Assembly: GCA_965235115.1 (NCBI GenBank)
Contig: OZ249443.1
Coordinates: 6,882,001 to 6,946,000, forward strand
Length of the DNA: 64,000 bases
Direction: 5' to 3'
Source of the DNA: Laetmonice hystrix
Lineage: Eukaryota
Part shown: positions 167-25,100 of the stretch, piece by piece
Position numbering within the stretch: the stretch's first letter is position 1
Layout: the number at the start of each line of letters is the position of its first letter
The notes under the pieces: generated by a model
The model's database searches: none
The model's input: only the letters and a program-made list of their open reading frames with translations
Told to the model about the DNA's origin: nothing
Translations under genes and position numbers: made by a program

Positions 167-232
167 CTAGGTGCGCACTTGGAACTTGCCAGCCTTTGTT
201 ACGTACTTCACTCCTTTGAAAGGCTTATATTT
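167..232 (-). CDS. AP3M1: AP3M terminal coding exon (KYKPFKGVKYVTKAGKFQVRT*)
   Basis: 66 nt, ttttcag| acceptor, TAG stop at 169-167; canonical mu3 C-terminus. It follows a 7.5-kb intron. Confidence 0.95.
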   Translation of the reverse strand, partial: KYKPFKGVKYVTKAGKFQVRT

Positions 233-3200
233 CTGAAAACCCAACAAGGAAGAATTTCATAAATATATTCAAATGTTTACGAGTTGCTTTAGGCTGCAGA
301 ACTCGTGACGTGATGACATATTGGTAAAAACGGTACTGAAGAGGAGAGAAAAATATTGGCCGCCTAAAGTCTAAGCATCCTAGTAAACGGAATTAATGAG
401 GAAATGCAAGATATAGGAAGGTAGGCATGCAAGCATACAGTATGAGGGCAAAAGAAAAAAACTGACCACTCTTTTACGCAGTCTATTCTGGTTTTCTAGT
501 ACTTAGCATCTAATATTGTATTAAAGTACTTAACATGAAGCTATATCTCCTATTGCATTATGAAGATATGGGTAAGACGTGTTGGAATTCCGTGTTTACG
601 GGGATCACAAAGAAGACACGACTAATAATAAGAAGATATCACTTTGCATAACGAGATATGTATGAGATCGAGAGGCATTCCATGAAAAAATAGGTCAAGG
701 TCCCCAGGCAGCATCTCAAAAGGTCAGGCCAACCGTGTCAATTAAGGTCAAGTCTGCGTTTCTGGCACTCATGCACTTTTTCTAACCCCGTTGTATCTAA
801 AAACAAGAACTGACGGTTATTCAAACACCAAGGATTTGATTAATCTATAGGTCCTTAGAGTTTATCTGTCTAATCTCTTGTTAGCGCGCCAGCCACATGT
901 AAAAGGTATTGTGTGCAGGGGAAGGGGCACAGAACTCAAATAATGATGTGCAGGGACAGAAGGCACTTTTTACAATAAAAATAATTGCACACAAATATAC
1001 AGTGACCACATGCAAGCTTCCCCTACGTTTCCAAGTTAAATTGTTTGCATTTTTTATTATAAATTTTTGGGATATACAAATATATATCATGAATTGTCCT
1101 TTGTCACAATAAATTTAAGGAAAAGACTTAAGTGCTCGGTTTAAAATCTAAACAAACCACGACTAGCATATCAACAGCATCTTAGATTCTACAGATTATG
1201 TTCCTTTTTTAAGGGGGGGGTCCTTTTCTTCATCTAAAAACTTGGCTTCATCTGATGATCTCATGCAGTCGGCCCTGCACTTGACCTGGACTGACCTAAA
1301 TATTAATAGCCAAAGAATGAGTTTGTCTTGGTTATGGGATAATCGTTTGCTGGGGGCAATCTTGGTCAGACTGGCGGTGCCATTGGTTTACGACCCGGTA
1401 CCGCCAGGCTGTAGAATCTGTTTACACCGAGTTAAAATAGAACTGGTTCCCCTTATATTTCAGCTACTCAATAAAACGTATCACTAATCCTAACTTAAAG
1501 GGTGCCAATAACCTATTATTGATATCAGGAAAAATTACCCCGGTAAGTAACGTAAAACAATTAAATAAACAATATCTCTGTCTTTGAAAATGAAAGAATT
1601 ATAACATGACTTGTCATATTCATGAAAATATCTCGCCGACCCTATGATGGCATTCAGGACCATTTAAATAAAGAATTAAGGAAAACATGTTTACTGTACT
1701 AAGAAAATAAATAAGTAACCAAGTAAACAAACAAAATATTAAACAAATGTTAAAAAATGATCCATTCATACTTACTACTTGCTTTGACAAAATGAACTCT
1801 CTAACTCTAAATTACAGAAAGGAATCCACAAAACTCCTGCCTCGCCAGTCATGGCACCTAGCAACCCCCCAGTAAAAGTCTACGAATCGCGACAACCTCA
1901 AATCTCTTTAACTAATAAAGGTTAGATTGTGGTAGTGCGTTAAGATGGGACGAGAAACCATTGATTAAGTCCTTTAATTGACTGAACGTTTTAACAGGAC
2001 TAATATTTTCCGAGATCTAGAAGGAATAAATCATGCCTAAACAAAATAAAAAAGATATTAGAAAAAAAAGAGATACTTTTTTTCCACTTCAAAGCTGCCT
2101 CATGCCTCAACACTAAAAAAATGATGTACCTCGGAATAAATAAGTAAATATTTCACAACCTCAATTTCACAATATGTCTGTTATATAGACTGGATAGCAA
2201 CAAAACCTACTGGTTACAGTCCTTTCTATTATATCAAGAGCTTAACTTAAATTGTGCAAGTCCCGTGCATGCTATAAGCCACCTCCACGACCGCAGGATA
2301 AGCCGACAATTATATATATCTACACAACAAGAAATAAAAGTATCCTTCTGGAAAGAATTTAGAAGAATCAAACAAAGGTTCCATGTACTCGTACCGACGG
2401 TCCCGTGTTGTATATTAAAGCCACATGCTACCATGTAGAACGTCCTACACCCACTGTCACTGCCATCATACGTTTCTAAACTATCAATTCAAAATAACCT
2501 TTTCATTCCGTGTGTGTACTTCTATACCCCCTGAAGCTCCGGACAAATTTGTAAACTTGGTGTTCTCCGTCAACAAATAAATGCATGCTGCTCACACTTG
2601 ATCTAATCTCAAACATATGTGGATAGGAACAGTAAAAAGCGATATTTGCATAGAAAAGAAAATTGTATGTAAAAATCAACTGTTTGAATAAATGCGAAGC
2701 GATGACAATTGTTAGAAAAGAATAAAATTATTCAAAGAAAAGGTCATGCATAAATTTGGTAATTTGAGGAGGTTCTTGGAAAGCGACCGAAAGGGTTCTG
2801 TACATAGGTCTGTGATAAACACAGGAATATGGGCCTGGATTCTGCCGCTAGGGGGCGGGGCAGTCTGGCAGGAGGATGGCAGGCTTGCACTAGTGAGATG
2901 CTGTCTAAAGGGAGATTGGAAGAGATTCCATCTAGGCATACTTCATTTTTGATAAGCGTCAAGGCCTTCGACACGCCTTTCTGATCACTGGAATCCCTGT
3001 CCTAAAAAAGGAACGTACAACATTGTGAGCGGGCCGAGCCAATTGTCATCAAGATGTGGCAAGACATAATCAAGGATACACAAAATACAAGACGGGGTTC
3101 TGACAGAGGCGCCACCTAGTGTTAACTTGGAGTACCAATGAACTGACAACAATTCCCGTTACACTTAGCTACAAGAAGAAAGGAATGTATATTGTTCGAT

Positions 3201-6200
3201 TCATACAATCAGTGTCATTAATAACGAAGACTTTCAACCTTCCTATCCTAAATTACACAATAATTTAAGCTTTAATCGTTCAACAACAAAAAACTGAACA
3301 ACCAAAACAAGTCCAACGACTGAAAACAAAGTGTCTTATAACTAAAGATCTAGACTGAATCTCTCTTCAAAATAAAGGATTCCTGAAACAGTCAAGTGTA
3401 TAACTGATGGCCCTTCGACTGGATCAATTTCTGAGGTTTGTTTAAAGGTAGTGCAGACTGACAAATCATGTGAAGCAATGAAACATCAGTGAGGGAAACA
3501 CTGAGTGCCTTACGATCTGTTCCCCTGTACATATCTCAATACTGGTAACCTGGAACCCATTCAATTCCTTGCCTACTCAACACTACGATCATCATGTATT
3601 AGGAAGAGTCCGCGTTCACTTGGGGAACATGGTGCCCTTCTCTTTTGAGATGCGGCAAAGGCTCCTTTCACTTCAGTACCACATTGGATAGCCCCATGGG
3701 AGAACTTCGCAGCAGGGTCTGCTTTCTCAAACCCTTTTGTTCAATTAGCTACGACGCCTTTCCTACTAAATATCCGCTGCCGTCAACCGTGTGCCTGATA
3801 GCTGACACTCAGGACAGTGTTTTTTTATATCTAATTTCTGGTCTCAGGTATAGATCAGACTATTCTCGGTGACAGCGGTTTGGTTGGCCATCTTTTGGTC
3901 AGCTCATGTCATTTAGGCGTTAGCTTTCCTTGGCAACAGATCAAAGTAGAACATTTTAGAGGTTGTCTGGTGGGTTCAGATCAAACATCGTGCAAAGTCT
4001 AGTTTGTTAGGGTTAAATAGTAAGCACATGTGGAATGCATTTCATGAAAGCAACATTATGGGCGACCTGAAGTTTTTAAATACCGGTATATAGTAAGTTA
4101 GTCGGAATTTCTCCTAAACCATAGCAACAAACCAGATTGAAAAAAAGAGAAAATCATTAGTTTGGCTACCTTTATGGGAGAATACTAACATTGTACCATC
4201 TGAACTCATCAAGGTAAAATCTCCTTATATCAGTGCAGCGTCCAAGTTTAAAACCAACAACGTTAAACCATCATAGGTAATGTTCAATACCCTGAGGGTC
4301 AACTGTACGCTGAGGGTCAACTGTATGCTGAGGGTCAACTGTATGCTGAGGGCCAACTGTATGCTGAGGGTCAACTTACACTGAGGGTCAACTGTATGCT
4401 GAGGGTCAACTGTACACTGAGGGTCAACTGTACACTGAGGGTCAACTGTATGCTGAGGGTCAACTGTATGCTGAGGGCCAATTGTATGCTGAGGGTCAAC
4501 TTACACTGAGGGTCAACTGTATGCTGAGGGTCAACTGTACACTGAGGGTCAACTGTACGCTGAGGGTCAACTGTACGCTGAGGGTCAACTGTATGCTGAG
4601 GGTCAACTGTATGCTGAGGGTCAATTGTATGCTGAGGGTCAACTTACACTGAGGGTCAACTGTATGCTGAGGGTCAACTGTACACTGAGGGTCACCTGTA
4701 CGCTGAGGGTCAACTGTACGCTGAGGGTCAACTGTATGCTGAGGGTCAACTGTATGCTGAGGGCCAACTGTATGCTGAGGGTCAACTTACACTGAGGGTC
4801 AACTGTATGCTGAGGGGTCAACTGTATGCTGAGGGTCAACTGTACACTGAGGGTCAACTGTACGCTGAGGGGTCAACTGTATGCTGAGGGTCAACTGTAT
4901 GCTGAGGGTCAACTTACACTGAGGGTCAACTGTATGCTGAGGGTCAACTGTATGCTGAGGGTCAACTTACACGGAGGGTCAACTTACACTGAGGGTCAAC
5001 TGTATGCTGAGGGTCAACTGTATGCTGAGGGCCAACTGTATGCTGAGGGTCAACTTACACTGAGGGTCAACTGTATGCTGAGGGGTCAACTGTATGCTGA
5101 GGGTCAACTGTACACTGAGGGTCAACTGTACGCTGAGGGGTCAACTGTATGCTGAGGGTCAACTGTATGCTGAGGGTCAACTTACACTGAGGGTCAACTG
5201 TATGCTGAGGGTCAACTGTACACTGAGGGTCAACTGTACACTGAGGGTCAACTGTATGCTGAGGGTCAACTGTATGCTGAGGGCCAATTGTATGCTGAGG
5301 GTCAACTTACACTGAGGGTCAACTGTATGCTGAGGGTCAACTGTACACTGAGGGTCAACTGTACGCTGAGGGTCAACTGTACGCTGAGGGTCAACTGTAT
5401 GCTGAGGGTCAACTGTATGCTGAGGGTCAATTGTATGCTGAGGGTCAACTTACACTGAGGGTCAACTGTATGCTGAGGGTCAACTGTACACTGAGGGTCA
5501 ACTGTACGCTGAGGGTCAACTGTACGCTGAGGGTCAACTGTATGCTGAGGGTCAACTGTATGCTGAGGGCCAACTGTATGCTGAGGGTCAACTTACACTG
5601 AGGGTCAACTGTATGCTGAGGGGTCAACTGTATGCTGAGGGTCAACTGTACACTGAGGGTCAACTGTACGCTGAGGGGTCAACTGTATGCTGAGGGTCAA
5701 CTGTATGCTGAGGGTCAACTTACACTGAGGGTCAACTGTATGCTGAGGGTCAACTGTATGCTGAGGGTCAACTTACACGGAGGGTCAACTTACACTGAGG
5801 GTCAACTGTATGCTGAGGGTCAACTGTATGCTGAGGGTCAACTGTACACGGAGGGACAACTGTACACGGAGGGGCACCCGTAGGCTATAGCTGCCTGAGT
5901 GATCCTGTATGCCGCTATCAATAAAACATTTGAAATTCCTCATGATCTCCGAGGAAGATCAAAGGAAAGTCCCATGATTATTTCAAAATTCACACGTTTT
6001 CAGCCAAACGCCGACCACTGACTGACTTCCACGGTTTTTACCCATGAAATCTTTTTTCTATTGTCCTTGATTTCTTACTTGGAACTAATTATTCTCACAA
6101 ATCAATCACTGCTTGCAGACACTATGACCTCCTTTCGAGTCTTCAAGTCCCGTTAAACACGGAACTCCAGTCCCGTTAAACACGGAACTCCAGTCCCGTT

Positions 6201-9200
6201 AAACACGGAACTCCAGTCCCGTTAAACACGGAACTCCAGTCCCGTTAAACACGGAACTCCAGTCCCGTTAAACACGGAACTCCAGTCCCGTTAAACACGG
6301 AACTCCAGTCCCGTTAAACACGGAACTCCAGTCCCGTTAAACACGGAACTCCAGTCCCGTTAAACACGGAACTCCAGTCCCGTTAAACACGGAACTCCAG
6401 TCCCGTTAAACACGGAACTCCAGTCCCGTTAAACACGGAACTCCAGTCCCGTTAAACACGGAACTCCAGTCCCGTTAAACACGGAACTCCAGTCCCGTTA
6501 AACACGGAACTCCAGTCCCGTTAAACACGGAACTCCAGTCCCGTTAAACACGGAACTCCAGTCCCGTTAAACACGGAACTCCAGTCCCGTTAAACACGGA
6601 ACTCCAGTCCCGTTAAACACGGAACTCCAGTCCCGTTAAACACGGAACTCCAGTCCCGTTAAACACGGAACTCCAGTCCCGTTAAACACGGAACTCCAGT
6701 CCCTTTAAACACGGAACTCCAGTCCCTTTAAACACGGAACTCCAGTCCCGTTAAACACGGAACTCCAGTCCCGTTAAACACGGAACTCCAGTCCCGTTAA
6801 ACACGGAACTCCAGTCCCGTTAAACACGGAACTCCAGTCCCGTTAAACACGGAACTCCAGTCCCGTTAAACACGGAACTCCAGTCCCGTTAAACACGGAA
6901 CTCCAGTCCCGTTAAACACGGAACTCCAACAGTTTTCTCAGATGACAGACTTGTATCCTAATGATACGATAAACAGTGAAGTTTTATCCTCTAAATTCTT
7001 TACACTCTATTTGAGATAATCTTTAAATACACAGCATGCCAAAATACATTAACTCTAATCTCGCAATCTGTACATTCTAGTTAGGTTACCATGACATAAC
7101 ACAAGCAAAGCACCAAAACTCTACAGATTATCGCAAGTATTCTACCAACAACAGCCGAGAACATGGTTGAGCTGTAAATTATACCAGTACCCCCAAGACG
7201 TTTGTGAAGGAAAGACATAGAGAGAAAACCCATGGAATAGACTCTTTGAAGAAAGGTTCTGTTTCTTTATTTATAATATTTTCAAATTATCATCAATTAG
7301 ACAATATCCTGGCTCACTGAACATTGCATTGTGCAATTCTGTCCTTCAATTTTAACTACCGGGTACATACCCATTATTTAATCAAATACCTTTTGGTACG
7401 TCCAGTCATAGTTGTTCATCAATCAACATACCTCCAAGATTAGCACTTTAACGGAATCTCTTATTTTTTCAGACGAGGATTCTGTCTTCACAATTTATGT
7501 GAATTTTGTCAGATGTTTCTATTACTGTTGCGTTGATCCATTCAATAAATCTACTAGGGCAACCACAATGTAACTTTTGTTTTCATTTAGTAACATCAAG
7601 AGACAAAATAAGTTAACACGGTGGGGCTTAACAAAAAAAACGATGCAACTATATTGGCCGACATAAAGGTAGTAAACTAGCCACGACACAAAGGATTAGC
7701 CCGTCAGTGAGGCGATGACCTACCTCTCCGTACATGTCCAAACGGTTAACCTTGATCCCAGACACAGCCAACTGATTGATGGTGAACGCCACCTGGTGTG
7801 TAAAAATAAACTGAGATCACCTTCTCAACAAATGTGCATCTACTTAAACTTTGTCACAAGTCTATAAGAGATGGGTAGTTCCAATTAAAAGCATTAAATC
7901 TAGTGGAGTATCTGCCTCACAACAAAGCACTGATTTGACAATCTGCGCCGAAGGCTCAAGACTCGACAGTGAATGAGGACAAGAGTTTGTCAAACTGCGG
8001 TCAGATGAACTGGACCTACTTACTGAAATGGTTGGATTGGAATCAGGAGGGGGTACTCCCGTCTGTAGGTTTATCTGTAACCAAAGTAAACAGTATCTCA
8101 CAACAAAGGTATATCACTAATATACATAATCTATGCACATCCTCTTTGTGATCAATACTTTACATAAAATAAAAACCAGAAAAAAAGGTCAATCGCAATA
8201 ATACTGGTATTAGTATCCAACTGATTTTTGGGGGATGACCTAATTTCTTATCTATATATTTCCACCTAGGTCTCACATAAATTACAAATCACTGCTTTTT
8301 CCAGTGGACACTCACCGAGCCACGGATGTTGGGTAACTTTGTTGTGTCGATCTTACCAACGTCCCATGTCATGACCTTGGCGACGGGATCAAAGGAATAC
8401 TTCCCTTGGGTCGGGGTCAAGGTCACATTGAGGACAGCCTTTGAGAAGGGGATCTCCACGACAACATTCTCCACCTGTCAATGTAAGTCAAACACCAACC
8501 ATTGTACAGTAAGAAACAATTGTACGGTAAGAAACGATTGTACAGTAAGAAACCATTGTACAGTAAGAAACCATTGTACAAGAAACCATTGTACGGTAAG
8601 AAACCATTGTACAGTAAGAAACCATTGTACATGGGACCAGGCAATGGGCCTCACAAAAACACGGGTCCTGAACGTTTGATACTCGGCTCTTCATCCAAAC
8701 TCGTCCATGATCTGATAGACATATCGACAGGCTTATCAAACTTTCAATATGTCAACTGTCACAAGACAAGGAAAATCTGTAAAACTTGGGTCAAAAACAT
8801 TATAAAATGGGTAACGGTAAAATTAGGTACCGGTATACATGCTTCTGGAGGGCTTCACCAGATATGTACCGGTAAGTTTACATACACCCTGGCAGCCCCA
8901 AATAATTTATTATCACATCGGTATTGACAACACAACCATCAAACAACTATATAATACTACTTGAGACAAGTACTGGAGTACCAACTACTATTACCTGATT
9001 GCTGGTAGTCAGTAAAGGAGAGGACTATTTAAATAAATAGTGCTTGCTGCCTGGTACACAGTACTAGTATATCCGGTACCAATCAACATTACCCACTCAC
9101 TGTTGAAAGTACAATAGGAATGGCTAGGAAGAACGTGTGTGCTATTCTAGGCTATAAGATTATACTCTTAATAGAATTTTCTTTGTCTAAGTGCGATTTA

Positions 9201-12200
9201 ACAGTGATTGTAGGAAAATTTTTACTCCAAAATATGGTAATCATGTCATCATGAACTGATAATGACATCAGGCCAGTACCAACTCCCCCCCCCCCCCCAA
9301 CCGTTCTGACATAGAGAAAGAGACCCCGATATATCAAACTCCAACCAGTAGTTAAAGTCTCAGACGGCTGCAATTTGACAACTGGATATCGGTGATGATA
9401 AACTTGGAGATCTCATATTAGAAACACGCAGTTAGTAGAATTCACATTACAGTAAATTTGTTCTAGTGTAGTGTGTCAGTGTTAATGTACCCGGTAATAC
9501 TTACATGAAATACACTACGTCTATGAAAGATTACAACACCTTAATGAAATCATAAAATCATTATACTTTACGGAGTCTTATAATCATTACTTTTTCCATG
9601 AAAGCAAACTGTTTTTATAATGCCCCAGTTTTTATAATACTGAATCCTAAATTATTGTTTGATTATTTTTGTAAAAGTCACTGAAACTGTGTTGTGTTCT
9701 GACACAAAACGAAGAAACCAAGTTGTGATGTTCTAAAACAGAGTAAAATATTTTTAAACTGGTGGTTAACACGCAGTGTTTATGGAATATTGGTGTATCA
9801 TAAACTACGAGTCAACCATGCAGCATTGTGTGTGTGTGAGGTGACTTACCAGTAGAAACCGTCTGCCACTCTACAAAGCCAGCCACAAGGTGGACACTGT
9901 TAACTTGTGTGTCATTATATTACAGCTACTCACTGCAGTCTACCACAGCAAAGATTTTACTAACAATATTGATTTCTCTTCTCTCTTTCTTTCAAAAGGT
10001 ACCGATATACTAACTGTTTTGTACAGTCGTAACAAATGAAAACATGCTTGCAATTTGTAACATTGGGGGAGGGAATGATGATGAAGAAAATGTCTGGCGT
10101 CCTGTGACTTCTGTTGGAAATAAAATGATGACTTCTAGATTCTAACTGACACACCTGTGTTCGACGTTTTCCTTGCCTTAGCTACCTTTGATTTATAAAC
10201 ACACGGTCTCCTTAACACACAGTAGTATGATAAACAAATCAATATTTCACCCAGAATGGTGACCTGCAGGCACAGTTTTTAGGCAACAGAATGTCACACA
10301 CAAAGAGTGTTCGGTTTTTTTAAATCCACGGCCCATGTAGCCACTGTACAATCACATGGAGGCTCAATCTGAGCTCATGTCCTGGTCCTGTAATTCCCAT
10401 CTGTGTTAACACACATTCCTACATTACTTACCTCATTTACATCAAGCAGAAAATTTTCTTAAACCTTTTTTTTCTTTTTTTTTTACAAAATCAGGCCAAA
10501 AACACATTTTAAGTCAGGAGTCTTCATGATATCGTAGATTGCTTGTTTTTTTAAAGACCACAGTTATCTGTTTAACTTGACTTACTGATTTTCCCATGGT
10601 TTGTTTTGGTCCCACAGTGATGTCGAGCTTGCCGCTTCCTCCATCCTTGAAGGATATACTGTGTCGCAGGTATACTGGGATTGCGACCATACTAAAACAC
10701 ACACCAGGGGGTGCCACTGTGAGATACCATATAATACGGGACTGCAGAAAAAAATGTCAATTTTATCTACCAGTTCTAAATTTACAGGACTTTCGTTCAG
10801 CATTCCACGGTTATCGAGACCTGGATATTTCTAATAAGTGTTTCACAATGAGAAGAAAAACCTACTTTTGAGATCCGATGTGGTAGGAGATGAGACGGAA
10901 GCTGCCATCAGGAGGTACAAAGGAGAGAATCCTCTCGCTCTGAAAGGTCATCAGAGGTCAGGTCAGCGATAAAGGTATCACACAGCTAACTGTTTCTCAG
11001 AACTTTTTCTTTCAAATAGATCAAACGGATTGTGCTACTGGTACGTTACCTCCCAGCGTTTGAAGCGAACACATGGATGAAAGCTGACGTCATCAAGGAG
11101 TCGGGGGTTGACAAATGACAACGTCAGGTCAGGCATCCCACTCAGTTTGATGAGACAGTCGACCTGCAGGACAGAGTTTGCATTAGAAATAAATGTATCC
11201 CCTGGTTATGTTAATGTTCTTTTCTCAATCTCAAGCAATAAATACTACCGGTACATATAAAACTAGTCATATTAACATTTGGTAGGTACAACTCACATAT
11301 CCTTGGATCTCTGCAAATACTGTTGATCCTGACTTGTCAATAATAGCATCGATTTCTTCAATGACATCAAAGTAGGCTTCATTGTTGGTATACTTCACGC
11401 CTGTTCGTCTCCATGGCACGTTGGATAGTTGACCTGTCGGTAATGTGGCACTAACTCTGAAGGAAGGGGGTGGAAAGAGTTTAACATCACATTCTAAACA
11501 TCTCAAAATGAAACACCCATGGTTTGTCTCAAGAAAAAAACTACAATACACAATCTTTAAAAATTTATGAATCCATTTTTCAACATATATTTTTTAAAGA
11601 GGAAAACTGCACTATTTAATGTAACAGAAGAACATGATGGAAATAGATATCAACTTTGAAAGTTTTAACTTCTACATACAAATACTGGTACAACTATTTA
11701 CATATCACATAAAATGAATTTAAGCATTTTCTGCTTACAATTATACCTAGCTCGTATGACATATACTCATTAGTACAATTAAACACAGTATGTACAAAAA
11801 TCTAGTGCCATTAATTATACTACAATGCTTCATGCAATTGTAGTTCAGAGATTAAATGTGAAATTCTCCATCCTTTACAGCAGATGTTGTGGGTGACCTG
11901 GCCGCTACTTCAGCACCCCACGGGTTGCATGAACTTACGATGTAGATTTTCCTGTCACTGTATCAGTGATGGTACGGAGGAGGTTGGGTGGCTTGATGAG
12001 TTCCTTCAGTATATTAGACTCAGTCGCCAGCGGGAAGCCATTGTCCAGCATCTCATCCAGCAGCTGAGTTAGCCAATCAGGACGGCAGGCAAACACACGC
12101 AATGAGAACACAAAGACAACAGGCAAAAAGTTCTCAGAACAAATTGATGTTAAAGTGGAGGTAAAACGTGAACAAGTTCCAAAATCGTCTTTATCCCTAA

Positions 12201-15200
12201 TGTTGACATCTTGATGATCGGAGCATGAGAACCAACACATACCTCGATCTGATGTCGATCGGATTTTCGTACACACTGAATTCAATCCTTTAAACATAGG
12301 ATCTTAACTGCAGCATGTTTGCTAGCAGTCAGGTGGCCATTTCATAGGTAGGAGCATTATTATTCTGTTGCATATTTTACCTCCACTTTAAAGGATTTAA
12401 AGGATTAGAAACTGTCACTCAAACTTCCAACTAAGGCCACCATCTTATATGTGACATTTAATCTTTTGAGGCCACTGAATACCAGAATTCTGGAGGCATT
12501 ACTGCCTATATAATATTTGTGCAGAAATTTAAAATTTAACTTGGTCGTAGGCCTAATCTGGTTATAAATTGTTATTCAGGACATGACTGTAATGATGGAG
12601 TCTCCATGAAGTAAAACCCAAGTGCAGATTTACAAGGGCCGTAGATAGAAGTATGGTTAACATAACAGAAGAAGAGTCACCAGTGAAGAACTGATGCAGT
12701 TCTACGCAGAGTTTGTTAGGCAAGACAAGACTTGAGGAGAATGGCTGAACTAACAAACTTCAATTTCAATCTCATGCTTTCTGTTATCATTTTTAAAGGA
12801 GAATTGTGGGACCTATGAGCAACTCAGCAAGACTAGTGGTTTCTTCTACTTCAATGCTGCAAGTCAAACTTGTACTGATGACGATGCAAGTCTACAGTTT
12901 AGTTATTGCAGCAAGGTTGTCGTTTTTAGTTAGTTATGGCAAGATCTCAACGACTGCTCTCTGGGCTAACCTCAGCAGATCCGTCAGTCAGGTATAAATC
13001 CAAATTTTTGGAGTCACAACCCTTGACAAAACATGGTGAGCTGCCAGTCGCGATCTTGAGACCTTGACATACCCCAGTAATCATCTCAAACCTGTTTTAT
13101 AACACTCCCACCAAAATGCTGGCAAATGCTGTCCCATTGTAGCTTCGTTATCTCAGGCTCAGAGGCAGAATTGCAAATAAATTGCACAGAAAAATTGAAA
13201 AATTTAAAGCATGCATGTCTTTTAAACTTTGAATTATGAGTGTACAGATGTCCACATTTGAATCATATGTATTACTTTGAACAGTATGTTCTCTCTTCAA
13301 GCTTAAGAATATTGGAGAATATAAAATTTAATTCAGCAACATAGAAGTTTGAGATGACACTGGCCAACATTTAATGGCAACGAAACACTTCTGTAATATG
13401 AACACAAATTTAATTTCTGCAAACAGTCTTGCACAGGCCTTCATAACTTACGTTTCAGACCTTCCTGTAAAGCGACTCTTCACCTTACGTATTATACTTG
13501 GTGGTCGAATAAGCTCTTTCAAAACATTAGACTCTGTGGCAAGTGGGAAGCCATTGTCCAACATCTCATCTAATATCTGGCAAAATCAATTTATATTTAC
13601 TTCGAGAGGGGTTCTCAGCTAATTTTTTATAATAGGACGGAGTGTGTAAATCTCAAGATTAATATTCATTTGCCGTATCCCAGTCCCTCCAGGTCCCCAA
13701 ATTATAATTATTTTGAGATCTCAGCACCTTTTCTCTGATCTCTGAGAACATAAATTTTGATGGGAAGAAAATGAACAAATTACCATTGAACATCAAACAA
13801 TCTCATGCCTGTAATTGCTGGGATATCAAACTGACAGCTTATGGAAGTAGTACTCACCTCATAAACAATAACATAATTCTCTTTAATTGTGGATTCTGTA
13901 CAATCAGTGAAGTAATCTTCAAATATGTCAATCACCCGATGCAGGAACTCTATCACAAACAGTGGCGGAACTAGAAATGAAAAAAAAAACATACTGGTAG
14001 AATCACGAACTCGAAACAGTGGCATTTCTTATACACCAGCCATTCAACGTAGATTTAAAAATTCCACAACAACTGAAGGGCCTCAGGAATTGATCAGTTA
14101 CCTTCCGTCATTGTGACAGCCACTACATACAGCTGATGTCGGAATATGTTGATGAGGTAGTGATGTGGAGTTGCAATAACAGGTGCAACATCTTCTGGTG
14201 ACGCAGCCTTCATGGAAAGAAAACAAATATTTTGTCTACAAAAGTCATTTTCTCCCCATCTTTCAGACTACTGTAGGCATGACCATATCTAACTTTGGTA
14301 TCTAAATAATATGCCTGCTCAAAATAAACATTTTTAGTATAATTTGATAAATTATGGGTATAAGCAGTCAGCATTACAACTAAATGAATGTTTTTCCTGC
14401 TCCCTAACGTTTTTTGGACCGCTGTTACGTTTAGATCTTATATTAGCTGCCTGACCATATCCTAAACTACTGTAAACAACTACATGGTGTTAACATTGCC
14501 CTGACTATATCATAAACTGACTGATCTTATTTACCAGCCTGACCATATCCTAAAAAACTGACTGACCAAGACACATTCTGACTGATCATTTTTAAATAAA
14601 TGATTTCTAATAAATTAATAAAATCACATTAAGTTTCATTCTAACCTTGCTCTGTGCCTCAAAGAAGTAGTCACATATAGACCGATGAATTACACTTTTC
14701 CAGTGTTTTTCCATAAATACGTCTCTGCAAAAGTGAAGACAGATTCAAAGCTCATGTGTTTTAACGGCACAGTTTCACCAAGTCAAACTGTAGCAGTCGT
14801 CCAGACCTACATAAACATGAAAATCTTATCATACATATACATGTACACCAGCCATAACCAATCTTCATGACTTTTACTATCCTGCTTGTTTCTACGAAAC
14901 ACCCAGCTACCATCCCCAGGTGCAGACCTAGGCAGGGCCCTCAACCTTAACCATGCCTTGCTGGCCCTTGGCCTCATGCCCTTTTCCCTCAACCCCTCCC
15001 AACCAGCCTATATTAGACGACTCATGCACACTACAAGATGCTACTAGTACTTTACTGAGGCCTGTATGCCACAGATATTTACATGGTACATACAATGCCC
15101 TTCTGTTAATGACAGTGTAACAGTAAAACGGGATCCATTGCATAAACTTTTCCAGAGATAATCTGTCCTGTCTGCAAAGAAATATATTACAATGATCTAA

Positions 15201-17443
15201 CTTGATTTACTTCTGACAATAGCGAAATGGGATAAGTAAACATGCCATGCTTCTCTTAGACGGTAAAAAATGAGATCAATTTTTACCCAGACTTCATACC
15301 TGCCAACATTTGGTCGACGGAATCCGGAATCATCCCAAATTGACTTTTGATACTCTCTCTATGGGCCCCTTTCTTTTATCCATCTCTCTCTCCTCCTCCT
15401 CTCCATTACTGACAGAAAGCACAACTCTGATTTACTAAACTTACCGTAATCTTCCGTGTATAAGCCGCACTTTTTTCCTCCTCAAATTAATCATAAATCA
15501 GGGGTGCGGCTTATACATGGCCACAAGCATCTGGAGACTTCTAGACTACGTCTATGTGGAGACCAAGTCATCCCTAGGTGGCGCCACCAACGCTATTATT
15601 ACACCCCTAGTGGTGGTATTGCGAATAAAGTATTAATGTTATATAGAGAGTTATAGATTTAAAGAAACATATAGAGAGAGATATAGACAGACTCACAGAG
15701 AAAGATTCTGGGCAAGATCATCATTTGAATGGGACAAAGGACAGGCATTTCTGATGGGAACTGGCCTGCTTTATGCCCACAACCCGTTAATACCCATTGT
15801 TTTACGTGTGACTCTTTGCTGACTAAGACAGTGAGATGGATTCCCAAAATAAAAGTGGGTCCTATTGTTTTCAATGCCCCGTGAAAGCAACGGCCCGTTT
15901 AACAATGGGAGGTGATGGTGGCACCGGCGTCTGGCCAACCTCTTTTCACACTATGGCCAAGCTGGTGAAACACCTAGCTGATACACGTCTCAGCATGTAG
16001 GGTTGATGGTTGGGGCCCAACTTTGCTACGACTGGCATCAGAAACGTGAATTTTTTTTTCTCTGACTTTTGCTCTAAAAACGGGGGTGCGGCTTATACAT
16101 GGCCGCGGTTTCTACACGGAAGATTACGGTAGTCTGGAGATCTAGTTATATGGCAGAGACCATAAACGATCTTTTTGCCAGTGAAATTCTGCCATGAGCG
16201 AGAGATTTAACATGTATTTGGAGGGAATCTATACTTATTCTGTAAATTTTATGATTCCGTAATATTTAGAGAGTAATCCAAAATGCGGAATACCGCATTT
16301 AAATCGGAAACATTCCGCAGAATGCGGAAGGGTTGGCAGGTATGAGACTTGTTCATATTCCTGCCCATGAGCACCTGGACCCCATTTCACACTAAGCCGG
16401 CGACATCGCCAAATGGACAGCGCAGCCCCATATAAGGTAATATGTTGCCCGTTCTAGCGACATGCCCCATTGCTTTAACGTTGGCCGCAACAGGCGACAT
16501 TTATTAAACAGGCCCCTGTCCGACTAAACACCAAAACAGACCATTTTTATCTGTAGCCAGTAGGTCGGTATATATTCCAAGGAAGGTTTCAATCAGTTTC
16601 AATATATTAGCTCGGTTTCGGTGTTTAGTCACAATCTGTGTCCACTACTGCCAAAAACAGAAAGCATGCATGGCCCCAATGCTTCGTTGTAAGGTAATGC
16701 TAATCAAGCATCAAGGTGATAAATCATGTCAACGACTTTAAGCGTGGTATAAATGGGTAACATGACACATCCGCCCGTAGCCATGTCCGCCCGGTCATGT
16801 CCGCCCCCCCGGGATGTAGCCCCTTCATCATGTCCGGCCCTCACCGCTCTGCTCAAGTGGCGCCCGGCAAGGGACACGTTACCTACGAGGTGGCTCTCAT
16901 TTGTTGGGCACTTAGCGATTACAATAGTTGATCTAGAGTTGTTGATACACTCCTCTAACTCAGTAGACTGTCCTAGTCACATTGACGGCTTTTCCCGGGA
17001 CCACGGCGGCAGGGTGGGTAGAGTCGAGTGTCTATCACAGAGGCACGGTGGGCAGGCGGGCATAGTACCGAGGGGCGGACATGACCGGGCGGACATGGCG
17101 ACGGGCGGACATGTCGTGTATAAATGTATCTATAGAAGAGTTTTTATATTAAGCCAGTTACAACCAACGCGGAATCGAATGGGCACTGACTGAAGGCGAA
17201 GCGGTTAGCCTCTCTCTCTATGTCTATGACAGTAAAGTGACGCCGCCACGCAAATGACCTCAAAATAACGTTTCATGTAGACACTTCCTTCGATCCCTTC
17301 CACAGTTACAGAGACAGTCAGTGCCAGTGGGGATGGACTGACTGAGTGGGCCGGTGGGCGGTGTCTGTCTGGACACCGAGTACAGCCACAATCTGACGTC
17401 ATACTCACCCAGACGTGTTGATTATAAACAAACTGTGAATCAT
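167..17443 (-). CDS. AP3M1: AP-3 adaptor complex mu subunit (mu3), complete spliced gene, 418 aa
   Basis: Exons joined in frame through GT-AG sites: 17409-17443, 14646-14724, 14102-14207, 13858-13970, [13452-13576 OR 11939-12063], 11297-11456, 11050-11163, 10866-10939, 10586-10691, 8316-8474, 8024-8074, 7724-7792, 167-232. Total 1257 nt = 418 aa + TAG. The translation (MIHSLFIINTSGDVFMEKHWKS...DEMLDNGFPLATESN...VPWRRTGVKYTNNEAYFDVIEEIDAIIDKSG...KYKPFKGVKYVTKAGKFQVRT*) closely matches vertebrate mu3A/mu3B as recalled. AP3M1 versus AP3M2 cannot be resolved; probably a single pro-orthologue. Confidence 0.96.
2800..3850 (+). mobile_element. Decayed non-LTR retrotransposon (LINE) reverse-transcriptase fragments
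   Basis: Short degenerate motifs in RT order: KAFDT (aag gcc ttc gac acg, 2961-2975), QQGLLSQTLLFN (about 3710-3745; cf. QGSxLSPxLFN) and LIADTQDSVFLY (about 3795-3830; cf. LFADDxxLY). Stops and frameshifts interrupt them. Confidence 0.4.
4292..5875 (+). repeat. Minisatellite, 18-bp unit CTGAGGGTCAACTGTATG (17- and 19-bp variants), with an 806-bp higher-order duplication
   Basis: Direct reading; rare variants recur at +806 (4475/5281, 4621/5427, 4971/5777). Confidence 0.97.
6146..6927 (+). repeat. Near-perfect minisatellite, 23-bp unit AGTCCCGTTAAACACGGAACTCC x34
   Basis: 782 bp / 23 = 34 units; only two adjacent units carry a G>T change (about 6700-6725). Confidence 0.98.
7724..7792 (-). 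CDS. AP3M1: AP3M coding exon 12 (VAFTINQLAVSGIKVNRLDMYGE)
   Basis: 69 nt, caccag| acceptor, GAG|gtaggt donor. Confidence 0.93.
8024..8074 (-). CDS. AP3M1: AP3M coding exon 11 (INLQTGVPPPDSNPTIS)
   Basis: 51 nt, ttacag| acceptor, TCA|gtaagt donor. Confidence 0.9.
8316..8474 (-). CDS. AP3M1: AP3M coding exon 10 (VENVVVEIPFSKAVLNVTLTPTQGKYSFDPVAKVMTWDVGKIDTTKLPNIRGS)
   Basis: 159 nt, tgacag| acceptor, TCG|gtgagt donor. Confidence 0.94.
8499..8630 (+). repeat. Minisatellite, 18-bp unit CCATTGTACAGTAAGAAA x about 7
   Basis: Direct reading; one unit is shortened by 3 bp. Confidence 0.95.
10586..10691 (-). CDS. AP3M1: AP3M coding exon 9 (MVAIPVYLRHSISFKDGGSGKLDITVGPKQTMGKS)
   Basis: 106 nt, ttttag| acceptor, TCA|gtaagt donor. 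Confidence 0.94.
10866..10939 (-). CDS. AP3M1: AP3M coding exon 8 (SERILSFVPPDGSFRLISYHIGSQ-N)
   Basis: 74 nt, tttcag| acceptor, AA|gtaggt donor; SFVPPDG motif. Confidence 0.94.
11050..11163 (-). CDS. AP3M1: AP3M coding exon 7 (VDCLIKLSGMPDLTLSFVNPRLLDDVSFHPCVRFKRWE)
   Basis: 114 nt, ctgcag| acceptor, GAG|gtaacg donor; LSGMP and FHPCV motifs of mu adaptins. Confidence 0.95.
11297..11456 (-). CDS. AP3M1: AP3M coding exon 6 (VSATLPTGQLSNVPWRRTGVKYTNNEAYFDVIEEIDAIIDKSGSTVFAEIQGY)
   Basis: 160 nt, ccttcag| acceptor, TAT|gtgagt donor; start of the mu homology domain (NEAYFDV motif). Confidence 0.95.
11939..12063 (-). CDS. AP3M1: AP3M alternative exon 5B (LLDEMLDNGFPLATESNILKELIKPPNLLRTITDTVTGKST-S)
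   Basis: 125 nt, aactcag| acceptor, TC|gtaagt donor; closer to vertebrate mu3 (LLEEMLDNGFPLATESNILKELIKPP). Confidence 0.9.
13452..13576 (-). CDS. AP3M1: AP3M alternative exon 5A (ILDEMLDNGFPLATESNVLKELIRPPSIIRKVKSRFTGRSE-T)
   Basis: 125 nt, ttttgccag| acceptor, AC|gtaagt donor, open frame. Paralogous to exon 5B with the same length and phase. Missed by the ORF track. Confidence 0.85.
13858..13970 (-). CDS. AP3M1: AP3M coding exon 4 (VPPLFVIEFLHRVIDIFEDYFTDCTESTIKENYVIVYE)
   Basis: 113 nt, ttctag| acceptor, GAG|gtgagt donor. Confidence 0.95.
14102..14207 (-). CDS. AP3M1: AP3M coding exon 3 (AASPEDVAPVIATPHHYLINIFRHQLYVVAVTMTE)
   Basis: 106 nt, aag| acceptor, G|gtaact donor; longin-domain sequence. 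Confidence 0.92.
14646..14724 (-). CDS. AP3M1: AP3M coding exon 2 (DVFMEKHWKSVIHRSICDYFFEAQSK)
   Basis: ttgcag| acceptor, AAG|gttaga donor, 79 nt, phase-compatible with neighbours. Confidence 0.93.
15295..16344. mobile_element. Non-autonomous DNA transposon, 13-bp TIR CATACCTGCCAAC and 6-bp TSD AGACTT (hAT-like, 6-bp TSD class), interrupted by a nested MITE
   Basis: catacctgccaac at 15295-15307 and gttggcaggtatg at 16332-16344; agactt directly flanks both ends (15289-15294, 16345-16350); CGGAA subterminal motifs. Confidence 0.85.
15444..16129. mobile_element. Tc1/mariner-pogo type MITE, 17-bp perfect TIR CCGTAATCTTCCGTGTA and TA TSD
   Basis: TA|ccgtaatcttccgtgtataagccgcac ... tacacggaagattacgg|TA; subterminal GGGGTGCGGCTTATACATGGCC occurs twice (about 15501 and 16083); no transposase ORF. 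Confidence 0.88.
16756..17117. mobile_element. MITE-like element with about 45-bp imperfect inverted arms built from CATGTCCGCCCG subrepeats; possible 9-bp TSD GTATAAATG (Mutator-like)
   Basis: The left arm (about 16767-16808) is the reverse complement of the right arm (about 17072-17114); gtataaatg occurs at 16747-16755 and 17118-17126. The extreme termini match poorly. Confidence 0.6.
17409..17443 (-). CDS. AP3M1: AP3M coding exon 1 (MIHSLFIINTS-G)
   Basis: ATG at 17443-17441 in context caccATG; donor GG|gtgagt; upstream cag/cag acceptor implies a non-coding 5' exon. Confidence 0.92.
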
Positions 17444-21418: not shown

Positions 21419-22186
21419 CTACGTCGTCCTTGGCCTGCGTCCCCTCCCTCGCCGGGCCCCCCGTGTGCCACGTTTGGCCCGCACTGTTTTAACTGGCACC
21501 ACTTCTACAACCTCTTCATCGTCAGTCGTGTCTGACTTCTCTAAATCTTCCTTGTCGTCAACATGTCCGTCTGTCGCCCCATTACTCGCTGCAATCTCTG
21601 TGATTACAGAGTCGTCACCGTTATTTATCGGTGTAGGTTCAGATGCCAGCGACTTGACGTCCGTGATGGCAAACGGGAGTGACTCCGCGTCCAAGCCGTC
21701 AGTGGCGCCCTCTGGTGTATCCTCCACAACGCCGTTTAGGGTCTCGCCCTGGGGGGAACTTGTATCATCATCAACATCCGTAGGCTCCGCAGTTTCTTTC
21801 AACGCGTTCGCCTTCTCTTCCTTGCACTGGACATCGCTCGGCTTGTCCTCCGGCTCAACTTTCGCTTTACACCTGCGGCTGACGTCAGCTGTTGCCTTGG
21901 CAACCTTCGCTAAGGTACTGACAACGCGTCGCGTCATCTTCTTGGGTTCGACAACAATGGTGTCGTCATCAGACTTACTGTGGTTGTCAGTTTCAGTCTT
22001 GATGTCGGCTGTTAGCTCAACAGCAGGTTTTATGTCTATGTCACAGTTTCGTTGGTCGGTATTATATACTTGTCTTGTAGAGGAAACCTTCGGTTTGTGC
22101 ATGGAGATAGACGGGGGCCCGCTGTCCAGGAGACTCTCCGTAGCGTTTGCTATACTCCTTTCTAAGTCCAGCTTCTCAACGGCTTT
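21419..22186 (-). CDS. CIZ1: CIZ1-like terminal exon: acidic low-complexity region with Arg/Gly-rich tail (...RAKRGTRGARRGRGRRPRTT*)
   Basis: 768 nt after a gtttcag| acceptor; lies in the 282-aa ORF 21419-22267, whose first 27 codons are intronic. Confidence 0.83.
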   Translation of the reverse strand, partial: KAVEKLDLERSIANATESLLDSGPPSISMHKPKVSSTRQVYNTDQRNCDIDIKPAVELTADIKTETDNHSKSDDDTIVVEPKKMTRRVVSTLAKVAKATADVSRRCKAKVEPEDKPSDVQCKEEKANALKETAEPTDVDDDTSSPQGETLNGVVEDTPEGATDGLDAESLPFAITDVKSLASEPTPINNGDDSVITEIAASNGATDGHVDDKEDLEKSDTTDDEEVVEVVPVKTVRAKRGTRGARRGRGRRPRTT

Positions 22187-25100
22187 CTGAAACAACACAA
22201 CAGTCAACACTTTAATCACACAATCACACGGAAATGGGTCTACTCTTCGAGTCTGTACTTCACCCATTACAAAATATCTTTGTTTAATACTTTAATTGCG
22301 AGTTCGGAACTCTTTCTTCCCCTTTCTCTCTTTTTCTTTCTTTCTGCCCCTTGAGGCCTAAATAGGTTCTTTATTATTTGGTGCGGGGTTGATGCTACAT
22401 CTGTAAAGCTTCATCCTGGACAGGTAGTACTACCTAGTAAGCATATAAGCGGTTAAAAATTACACTCTGTCGTGTTACACCAAAATGAAAGGGCGTTTTC
22501 CCATAAAACCTCTGCTTTCCCTAGAAACCCAAAACCTCAAAAACTGCCTCCTCCCTCCGGCTGTCAGTCAGAATGCCTAGAACAGATTAGAATCTACACT
22601 CCCTGTAAGTTGAAGCTGGAAGGTTAGGGAAACCCTACACGATCGCGGGGTTAGAAACCGGTCACAGTAAGCGTAAGTGATCAGAACTTGGATGTCGATA
22701 CAGCCTACCTACGGCTCGTGGTCAGGGAGCGAGCTTGCCAAGGGATTTAGTTCGAATCTACGGCGATTTGTTATCCCTACAAGGTATTCAAAGTTGACCT
22801 TAATCCTTATACTAAAAGCTCCAGGTCCTCTAGTCCGACAGCCCAATAGCTCCACCGTCCACTTTGGCCTAAAACCAAGTATAACCAGCACTAAACCTAA
22901 CCTTAACTCCAACTATAGGGATTGGGCTATCGGACTGTCGGACTAACAGTCCCTCCACAAACTAACAGGAAGGCAAGGAACATTCCTCTTTTGCCAGGAC
23001 CTCTTTTTGAGAACTGAGGTTAGGGTTAATCTCGCTGTGCAAATCAGTGGTCTGACCTAGGCTACTTGTTCTTGAGCTAATTGGTGACCCGTTGGTGTTG
23101 GTAGGTGTGGTTGTACGCAAGTTAACTTGTAAAGCTAAAAACATGGACGTGCTGCAGCATGCATTGAGTACCCCTCAATGAGGAAAGGCGGCTGGTGTCT
23201 AGGGACGGCCGACTTTCTGGAAAATAGTCTATTTCTCTTGATTTAGTGATAAACATTTTTGAAGGAGGCCAACACTTCCTACCAAAAACTAAACACACAA
23301 TTCCAAACAAAAGGAAAAGGATAAAATTGTAACAGAGTGAAACAATTGTATTCGAAACCATTATCGGATAACTTCATTAACAAATAAAATGCGCTAAAAC
23401 TTACTGCATATCTGTTATAGTGCGGGCGAGTCTGGCAGTGACTCACGCACGCTGCGTACTCGTTGTGGAAGAACTCTCGGCAGAGTCTACAGAAGAAACC
23501 TGACACCTGGATCACATATCCCTGACCTGAAATACAAAACGCGTATCAATATGAAATCATCAACGGGAAACTAATGCAATAGCCTAGTCCTGTTTTAACA
23601 AATAAAAAGAATATTCTTAAGTCGGATTCATAGGTTTAAATACTTTATAGTAATGATATGAAATAGTTGAAGAATTTCCTACTCACCTACTGCCGTTTCA
23701 GAATCGTAGTCAGGTAAAACTTTGATGTCCGCCATGTCGTCTGTCGACCCGTCAGCCTCCTCGGCCGAACCGTCCCTCTCCGGAATGTTCTTGACTGAGC
23801 TGACCTGGGGTGGAGTGACCTTGTTTGGAGTGACCTTGGTCGGAGTGACCTTGGTCGGAGTGACCTTGGTCGGAGTGACCTTGGCTGGAGAGATCCTCTT
23901 TGGCTGCACCTTAGGTGTCGAAGCCTTGTTTGGACTGACCCTGGCCGGTAGAACCTTAGTGGGTGTGACTTTAGCGGGGGAATCCTTAGTTGACTTGACC
24001 TTGGCTGGCTTGGCCTTGGGCAGCTCCTCTTTCTGGAGGTCAGTCTCCTCAGTGGCTGACTGTGGGGTGTTAAGTAACAGATTAAACTTATTATTAATAT
24101 ACGTAATAGAAACGTATAAAGGTACTACTCCACGGTACTGCTCTCAGGCAGACACAGGTACGATTACTAATGTCATCGTGATAAAGGAAGAGTAAAAGGG
24201 ATCGTTCAATTTATCTGATAAAATATGTTACACTAAGTCCCAAAACGAGTTGTCGAGGGTACTGACCTCTATGGTTATGAGTAGCCCTGTCTCCGCCTGC
24301 TGGACCTCGTCCATTCTGATCGGCGGCTGCTGCTGCTGCTGCTGCTCCTCCTCCTGCTGCAGCTGCTGCTGCTGCATCTGCTGCTGCTGATGGGACCGAG
24401 CCTCGGGTGGTGGACCCCCGGTCTGCTGGTCCTTGGTGGACCGGCGACCTTCCACTTCCCCGACATCCGGCTGTAACAATACATATAGGTTACTCCGGTA
24501 CCTGGGGCACGGAGCTGGGAGGGTGTGTATGTGGGGGGTGGGGGTGGGGGGGTAGGGGGTTTGGTGGCAGATTTCTAGTATGTTTGATGGTAGTTGACAT
24601 GGTGTGCTGCATTCTGCCCCTGAATGTGGGAGCTCCGGTACCCTGGTATCTGCTTAATGGAGAACCCCCCCCCCCCCCCTCCCGCCGATAATTTTCTATA
24701 ACTTCATAAAATGCCCTTTTCAATTCCCTCCGAACAATTCACAACAGAACTTGTTAAAGCATTTCTTCCAGTTGCCTTCTGGGCGGGTGGGTTTATTGTT
24801 GATTTCGAGTTGCATACACACAGGGATTGGAAACATGTTCAATTTATCAGCTCTTCTGCCTGGCTAACTCCTGACCAAAACGTTTGTCGTTATCTTGGCC
24901 AACAACTCGGGCAGGCCTCCCTGTCCGCCTCCCTGTCCGATAAGACCTCCTGTTTTCTGCCCCATGCGCCATCTAGTGGCCACTAGGGATTAGCCCCGAG
25001 CGTACAACCCTGCCGGCTCATTGATCAAGGGACAACTTTTCCTGAGGGACAGTCAAGGTTAGGGCAAGGACACAGCGACGAACAACGCCATCTTTTACCT

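Follow-up and report, generated by a model that had tools for sequence, protein, structure and literature searches.

Linker helices of AP-3 and related complexes

According to two recent structure papers, the linker of the human AP-3 subunit mu3 forms an amphipathic helix that lies in the membrane. Density of the helix mu3(139-148) projects into the bilayer in a tomography study (Sci Adv 2026, PMC13178560), and the linker helix was built into in-plane density by Begley et al. (PNAS 2024, PMC11670113). When fused to mGreenLantern, the isolated helix binds supported bilayers, and this binding is removed by Triton (PMC11670113). Here, we describe the gene for the AP-3 mu subunit (AP3M) of the annelid Laetmonice hystrix, in which a pair of exons, apparently mutually exclusive, encodes two versions of this helix. 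The gene is located in a stretch of 64,000 nt from contig OZ249443.1 (assembly GCA_965235115.1, positions 6,882,001 to 6,946,000 of the forward strand). This stretch is referred to as the window, and coordinates are window coordinates unless a contig is named. A first-pass annotation of the window had pointed to a membrane-inserting helix in the human AP-3 linker, and the two papers place it at mu3 139-148.

The equivalent linker helices of AP-1 and AP-2 (in mu1 and mu2) pack on the beta subunits and not in the membrane, and they are phospho-regulated (PMC11670113). For mu2, such regulation had also been mentioned in the first-pass annotation. Splice variation of the mu3 helix is described in neither structure paper.

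The annelid switch can be compared with the vertebrate pair AP3M1/AP3M2, which likewise results in two mu3 proteins and thus two AP-3 complexes per organism. In vertebrates, however, the whole gene is duplicated, whereas the annelid switch alters only ~16-20 residues. AP3M1 and AP3M2 are the ubiquitous and the neuronal mu3 paralog, respectively. Among the sequences retrieved, the vertebrate-type helix cores are TILRSVVNSIT and TILRTVVNTIT, which we take to represent mu3A and mu3B. Both have a net charge of +1, so there is no charge difference between them.

Mutually exclusive exons from other animal genes (PMC9013439, PMC9741552) share the properties of the AP3M pair. They are adjacent and homologous, have equal length and phase with a length that is not a multiple of three, and are of ancient origin, one copy being conservative while the other diverges faster. 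The AP3M pair is unlike these cases in that AP3M itself was not found named as a case in our literature search. That search also retrieved no paper mentioning alternative exons in AP3M, and the switch has apparently not been described so far.

A duplicated exon in the only AP-3 mu gene

The AP3M gene is encoded on the minus strand and extends from its ATG at 17443 to its stop codon at 167 (167..17443). The exon map, resolved with its splice sites, shows 13 positions for coding exons, all of them using AG acceptors and GT donors, and position 5 is occupied twice. Exon 4 (13858..13970, minus strand), which is constitutive, ends in phase 0 with ...VIVYE. It is followed on the same strand by exon 5A (13452..13576), the upstream, derived and fast-evolving copy, for which orthologous A exons exist in eight other annelid genomes or contigs. 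An intron of 1388 nt (12064..13451) separates it from exon 5B (11939..12063), the downstream copy of the ancestral type, which is identical at the protein level to the Capitella B exon. The constitutive exon 6 (11297..11456) follows, and its first base completes a split codon, which becomes Thr after 5A and Ser after 5B.

Exons 5A and 5B each have 125 nt, an AG acceptor and a GTAAGT donor; they start in phase 0 and end two bases into a codon (phase 2). When translated from the minus strand, 5A gives ILDEMLDNGFPLATESNVLKELIRPP-SIIRKVKSRFTGRSE(T) and 5B gives LLDEMLDNGFPLATESNILKELIKPP-NLLRTITDTVTGKST(S). These are exactly the peptides listed in the first-pass annotation, and the interval given there agrees with the exon map as well, as 13498 belongs to the first codon after the PP motif in 5A and 11939 is the last base of 5B. 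Joining both exons, or skipping both, shifts the frame and leads immediately to stop codons. Because the shared length is not a multiple of three, only inclusion of a single copy keeps the reading frame. The exons are thus adjacent, homologous, of the same length and phase and equipped with intact splice sites, and single inclusion is needed. On the basis of these sequence features, we assign 5A and 5B, which belong to the sole AP-3 mu gene of this annelid, as a tandem-duplicated, mutually exclusive exon pair. Overall nucleotide identity is 65%, with 58 of 78 bases matching upstream of the PP motif and 23 of 47 downstream. Divergence is therefore concentrated after this motif, as had been claimed.

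The assignment of the gene to AP3M is based on length, domains and similarity. With either exon, the protein has 418 aa, the same length as human AP3M1, and its sequence identity is 73% with mammalian AP3M1 and 87-90% with annelid AP3M. For the full-length spliced forms, identity is 87-90% to P0176 and 83-87% to the Capitella protein P0296. The Pfam families were read on these relatives: P0176 carries precomputed annotations for PF01217 (longin-type) and PF00928 (mu homology), as does the Capitella product, with PF01217 being weak in the latter. The product is thus predicted to have the longin-type domain and the mu homology domain, and it has the length of about 418 aa, that are typical for AP3M. 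It is nearer to mu3 than to mu1, mu2 or mu4. When exon 5B was used as query, AP-3 mu-1 chains were the sole PDB matches (E 6.5e-15). When the complete 627-Mb assembly was searched in six frames, AP3M was found as a single locus, and the other mu-like loci are distant.

The intron that separates 5A from 5B harbors an element (12150-12391) that resembles a miniature inverted-repeat transposable element (MITE), with perfect terminal inverted repeats of 17 nt (TTAAAGTGGAGGTAAAA) at 12150-12166 and 12375-12391. The depth of genomic contigs reaches ~10,000-fold at 12228-12371, which indicates that this element is present in very high copy number. An inverted-repeat scan for competing RNA structures that could direct exon choice returned none that is convincing; it gave the MITE terminal repeats and weak AT-rich pairs, and both were rejected as evidence of such structures.

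Chemistry of the two helix versions

The exon aligns with residues 112-151 of human AP3M1 in the cryo-EM entries 9c58_M and 9rtw_M (HMMER). The part after the PP motif starts with an 11-residue core, which is SIIRKVKSRFT in 5A (13466..13498, minus strand; equivalent to human mu3 138-148) and NLLRTITDTVT in 5B (11953..11985, minus strand). Residues 139-148 of human mu3 correspond to core positions 2-11 and match the diverged part of the exon exactly. By position, the core is thus predicted to be the membrane-inserting helix. The human helix has the same location after PP and the same hydrophobic positions (I/L, L/I, V/I, I/V/F), in a protein of the same family with 73% identity. It exists, however, in one version per gene with a core charge of +1, while here one gene provides two versions with net charges of 0 (5B) and +4 (5A). 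Over 16 residues, the charges are +4 for 5A and +1 for 5B, in agreement with the first-pass values.

Hydrophobic moments were computed with the Fauchere-Pliska scale at 100 degrees per residue, using 5000 shuffles as control. They are 0.544 for 5A, 0.637 for 5B and, similarly, 0.571 for human mu3A, with a maximum near 90-100 degrees per residue. Both cores combine a segregated hydrophobic face with a high moment, as is characteristic for amphipathic helices, and the arrangement in 5B is near-optimal, being reached by only 3 of 5000 shuffles. A helical wheel confirms that both copies keep hydrophobic positions 2, 3, 6 and 10 on one face, no more than ~65 degrees away from the direction of the moment. 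The polar side differs. In 5A, K7 and R9 are located at about +/-80 degrees from the moment direction, K5 at -122 and R4 at +138 degrees, and the Lys/Arg residues occupy the polar-apolar interface of the helix. The equivalent residues in 5B are T7, T9, T5 and R4, which makes four Thr together with T11, and D8 faces away from the hydrophobic side. Mean hydrophobicity is 0.25 for the A helix versus 0.46 for the B helix. AlphaFold2, which was run with a 52-sequence alignment on natural relatives and not on the isoforms from the window, places a helix at 139-147 in the A-type protein P0204 and at 139-148 in the B-type protein P0176.

Conservation of the pair in annelids

An A exon followed by a B exon, with intact splice sites and frame-preserving lengths, was found in eight other annelid genomes or contigs. 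Four are contigs (L001, which has the same sequence as L002 and L009, and L003, L004 and L010), and four are from named species (Paralvinella palmiformis, Capitella teleta, Ridgeia piscesae and Dimorphilus gyrociliatus). The B exon always has 125 nt, while the A exon has 125, 128 or 131 nt. With the 5A peptide as query, a word-indexed protein search yielded 23 short matches, none of which was A-type. An exhaustive, profile-free search of representatives with this peptide retrieved three fragments with a 5A-like basic tail (P0001, P0093 and P0120). These led to the loci, which were then collected from contigs, a metagenome scan and annotated annelid loci.

The A set consists of nine genomic copies, including that from the window, and one mRNA (n=10), and the B set has nine members. 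Pairwise identity of the tail is 88% for B and 31% for A; in the longin-end half of the exon, the values are 96% and 67%. The core has a net charge of 0 in 9/9 B copies and of +1 to +4 in 10/10 A copies (mean +2.8). On average, it has 3.9 Ser/Thr residues in B and 1.9 in A. Nearly all A copies retain K5 as well as the hydrophobic pattern, and most retain K7. In ~110 metazoan cluster representatives with a readable linker, the core charge is 0 or +1. These data support the view, put forward in the first-pass annotation, that the hydrophobic face is the same and the polar face is changed, from neutral and Thr-rich to cationic, and they show that the direction of the change is conserved in nine annelid genomes or contigs; the functional half of that interpretation is an extrapolation, to which we return below.

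Retention of the TG motif, which had also been claimed, holds for both copies in the window. It does not extend to the other A copies (eight genomic, one mRNA), as the Thr is lost in 6/9 and the Gly is also lost in L003 and Capitella. In 52 mu3 proteins, conservation at the position of human T148 is 90% or higher, and G149 does not vary.

A copies differ from each other with pN of 0.12-0.21 and pS of 0.58-0.98 (pN/pS ~0.13-0.25), and dN/dS is ~0.13 for the closest A pair. When 5A from the window is compared to L001 and L010, non-synonymous change is far below synonymous change. Amino acid change is ~3x faster in A than in B. As judged from these values, the A copy is under purifying selection and not decaying.

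The exon peptides give a tree that would fit a single split between A and B (72/85 support; 66% of bootstraps), in which B falls together with single-copy outgroups. With 41 columns, which are too few, the tree is weakly resolved, and the Ridgeia A copy floats. The constant order with A upstream makes a stronger case for one old duplication than the tree. In the annotated proteins of octopus (12 isoforms), oysters, mussels, other molluscs and a nemertean, A-type sequences are absent and only the B-type is present. Metagenome contigs that are clitellate-like (including L005), a label based on sequence signatures only, namely a protein junction signature also present in the leech Helobdella, contain exons 4 and 6 and between them just one exon 5, which suggests that the A copy was lost in clitellates. 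B is the ancestral lophotrochozoan form, with a neutral core, a Thr-rich polar face and almost invariant sequence. The distribution of the pair implies that it dates back at least to the common ancestor shared by Dinophiliformia and the sampled sedentary annelids, and annelids have retained it for hundreds of millions of years.

Exon usage and gene models

For Laetmonice hystrix, three sequencing runs of one sample match exon 5A. Their contigs cross introns, from which it is concluded that the runs consist of genomic DNA from the very sample used for the assembly. No run contigs were placed at 10500-12083, which carries no weight as evidence. Transcripts are available from relatives. The alvinellid transcript contig L089 (1962 nt; protein P0204) has untranslated regions and an uninterrupted coding sequence in which the A exon is directly joined to exon 6, and its N-terminal part is 96% identical to Paralvinella. 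B-only forms are represented in relatives by several transcript-derived proteins and one metatranscriptome contig; the mRNA L067 is an example. A-only and B-only mRNAs thus both come from relatives, and the two forms were not recovered from one species.

Public gene models differ in their treatment of the pair. Those from Ridgeia (L092) and Dimorphilus (L093) use the A exon, the one from Capitella (L091) uses the B exon, and the model from Paralvinella palmiformis (L090, 436 aa) runs from A across the intron into B. The isoform pair is annotated in none of these four records.

Possible functions of the switch and alternatives

Exon choice would rewrite the polar face of a helix that lies in the membrane in the human complex. 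We propose that AP-3 complexes with mu3-A experience a stronger electrostatic pull toward anionic endosomal lipids and rely less on hydrophobic insertion. Complexes with mu3-B would have the canonical, weakly charged and Ser/Thr-faced helix and rely more on lipid packing or curvature; this helix could be turned off by Thr phosphorylation. If exon choice varied by tissue or stage, it would adjust the sites at which AP-3 engages and deforms membranes and the strength with which it does so. The proposal follows from helix chemistry: the A helix is less hydrophobic and has interfacial Lys/Arg, so it should depend more on anionic lipids, and the uncharged Ser/Thr face of the B helix should make it depend more on packing defects or curvature. 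Amphipathic helices that are Ser/Thr-faced or cationic are known to select different vesicles (PMC3135411). ALPS-type helices have a Ser/Thr-rich uncharged polar face, like B, and the cationic alpha-synuclein-type helix has interfacial Lys/Arg, like A. With ~10-11 residues, however, the mu3 helices are far shorter than either and are part of a large multivalent coat, so that this is an analogy and not membership in these classes.

Several points weigh against the lipid-based proposal, and on balance our opinion on it is evenly divided. The 5A moment is only moderately better than random, being matched by 529 of 5000 shuffles (~10%), and across annelids the mean moment of A (0.51) is below that of B (0.64). 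The cationic shift is small in Ridgeia, where the A core reaches only +1, and in Capitella the A exon has diverged strongly. Structure prediction, which had been proposed as a check in the first-pass annotation, does return a helix in the A-type and B-type relatives, but with a pLDDT of only ~43-50, which is low confidence; low values in the linker would not be surprising if the helix forms on membranes. The binding of the human linker helix survives 1 M salt (PMC11670113), so electrostatics may matter little for insertion. Finally, that Laetmonice hystrix uses 5A is deduced from its relatives and from the signs of selection.

Among the alternatives, control by kinases might be the main difference between the isoforms. 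T5, T7, T9 and T11 of the B helix could be phosphorylated to release the helix or to block it, and A would escape this control. A replaces three of the four Thr by Lys/Arg, many species lose T11 as well, and the lower Ser/Thr content of A cores fits this idea. So does the loss of T11 in 6/9 other A exons even though its human equivalent, T148, is so well conserved in mu3 proteins. The mu1 and mu2 helices provide a precedent for phospho-regulation, but they pack on beta subunits and not on the membrane, which makes the analogy loose. No phosphorylation of the mu3 linker turned up, with no search aimed at phosphorylation having been made, and 5A in the window itself retains the TG motif. We consider kinase control as the main difference fairly unlikely. 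It is less likely still that the isoforms are interchangeable, with expression partitioned between them (neutral subfunctionalization of splicing control) and with charge being tolerated drift on a solvent-exposed face. The low identity of A tails compared to B tails among annelids would be expected for a weakly constrained surface, the charge of A cores spreads from +1 to +4, and clitellate-like contigs appear to have lost A. This view is opposed by an A exon that is intact, spliceable and in frame in nine lineages at a pN/pS of ~0.13-0.25, by a charge shift in the same direction in all ten A sequences, and by the persistence of K5 and, mostly, K7.

The switched face might also act via protein contacts, with beta3, delta, ARF1 or cargo tails in the assembled lattice as partners. 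The packing of the AP-1 and AP-2 helices against the beta subunit (PMC11670113) points in this direction, and the longin-end half of the exon also differs more among A copies than among B copies. Yet two independent structures put the human helix in the plane of the bilayer, the isolated helix binds membranes by itself, and a partner contact is described for it in neither structure paper, to the extent that their text is accessible; we regard contacts of this kind as quite improbable. That 5A is an unused relic in the Laetmonice hystrix genome, with only 5B being spliced, is highly improbable. The matching runs for this species are genomic DNA only, as a relic would permit. Exon 5A has, however, an open frame of exactly 125 nt with a consensus acceptor and a GTAAGT donor, its non-synonymous change relative to L001 and L010 is far below the synonymous change, and an A-type mRNA exists in an alvinellid.

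Other features of the locus

Exon 8 (10939-10866), which encodes the start of the mu homology domain, is single in the window. In some annelid-like contigs, it is tandemly duplicated (motif SE[KR].LSF.PPDG...), with sites at L001:7306-7401 and 7677-7748, L010:2787-2864 and 3618-3689, and L083:1783-1890. The last AP3M intron has ~7.5 kb (233-7723) and contains a long tandem repeat, especially at ~4200-5960, with the frames VDPQHTVDPQ... and LTLSIQLTLS....

An intronless ORF on C21, a different chromosome, is the one further full-length mu-like match in the six-frame search; it was considered as a second AP3M gene and rejected, as it codes for AP-1 mu1. This ORF of 422 aa (G000:C21:5736847-5738094; L094:142-1407, minus strand) is a full-length match to AP-1 mu1 (PDB E 6e-222). 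Being intron-free, whereas AP3M has 13 introns, it may be a retrogene or the sole AP1M copy.

Elsewhere in the window, an open frame of 290 aa on the minus strand (21422-22291) codes for an acidic, Ser/Thr-rich sequence with a basic C-terminal end (RGRGRRPRTT) and is probably a large exon of a neighboring gene. Positions 36570-37111 are 542 N, representing an assembly gap or a masked stretch.

Implications

By sequence, the mutually exclusive pair is real and old, and it maps to the amphipathic helix of AP-3; the mechanism that we propose for it is plausible. It may be speculated further that annelids have two AP-3 coats with opposite helix chemistries. B would be a neutral, Thr-faced and phospho-switchable packing sensor and A a cationic seeker of anionic lipids. 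The two would serve different compartments or cell types (e.g., neuronal versus general lysosome-related traffic) and would have been in use already before Dinophiliformia, Capitellidae, Siboglinidae and Terebellida diverged. We consider this extended scenario possible but rather doubtful. If true, it would be a functional parallel to the vertebrate mu3A/mu3B gene pair, with specificity placed on the helix itself.

The finding corrects public gene models, as the one from Paralvinella fuses the exons and the others pick A or B arbitrarily. The mu3 amphipathic helix was recognized only in 2024-2026 and has been proposed to aid membrane bending by AP-3 without clathrin. The annelid pair represents a natural experiment on this helix, having the same hydrophobic face with different polar faces in an otherwise identical protein that has been under long selection. 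It offers ready peptide pairs for lipid and curvature assays and an exon-level genetic handle in tractable annelids.

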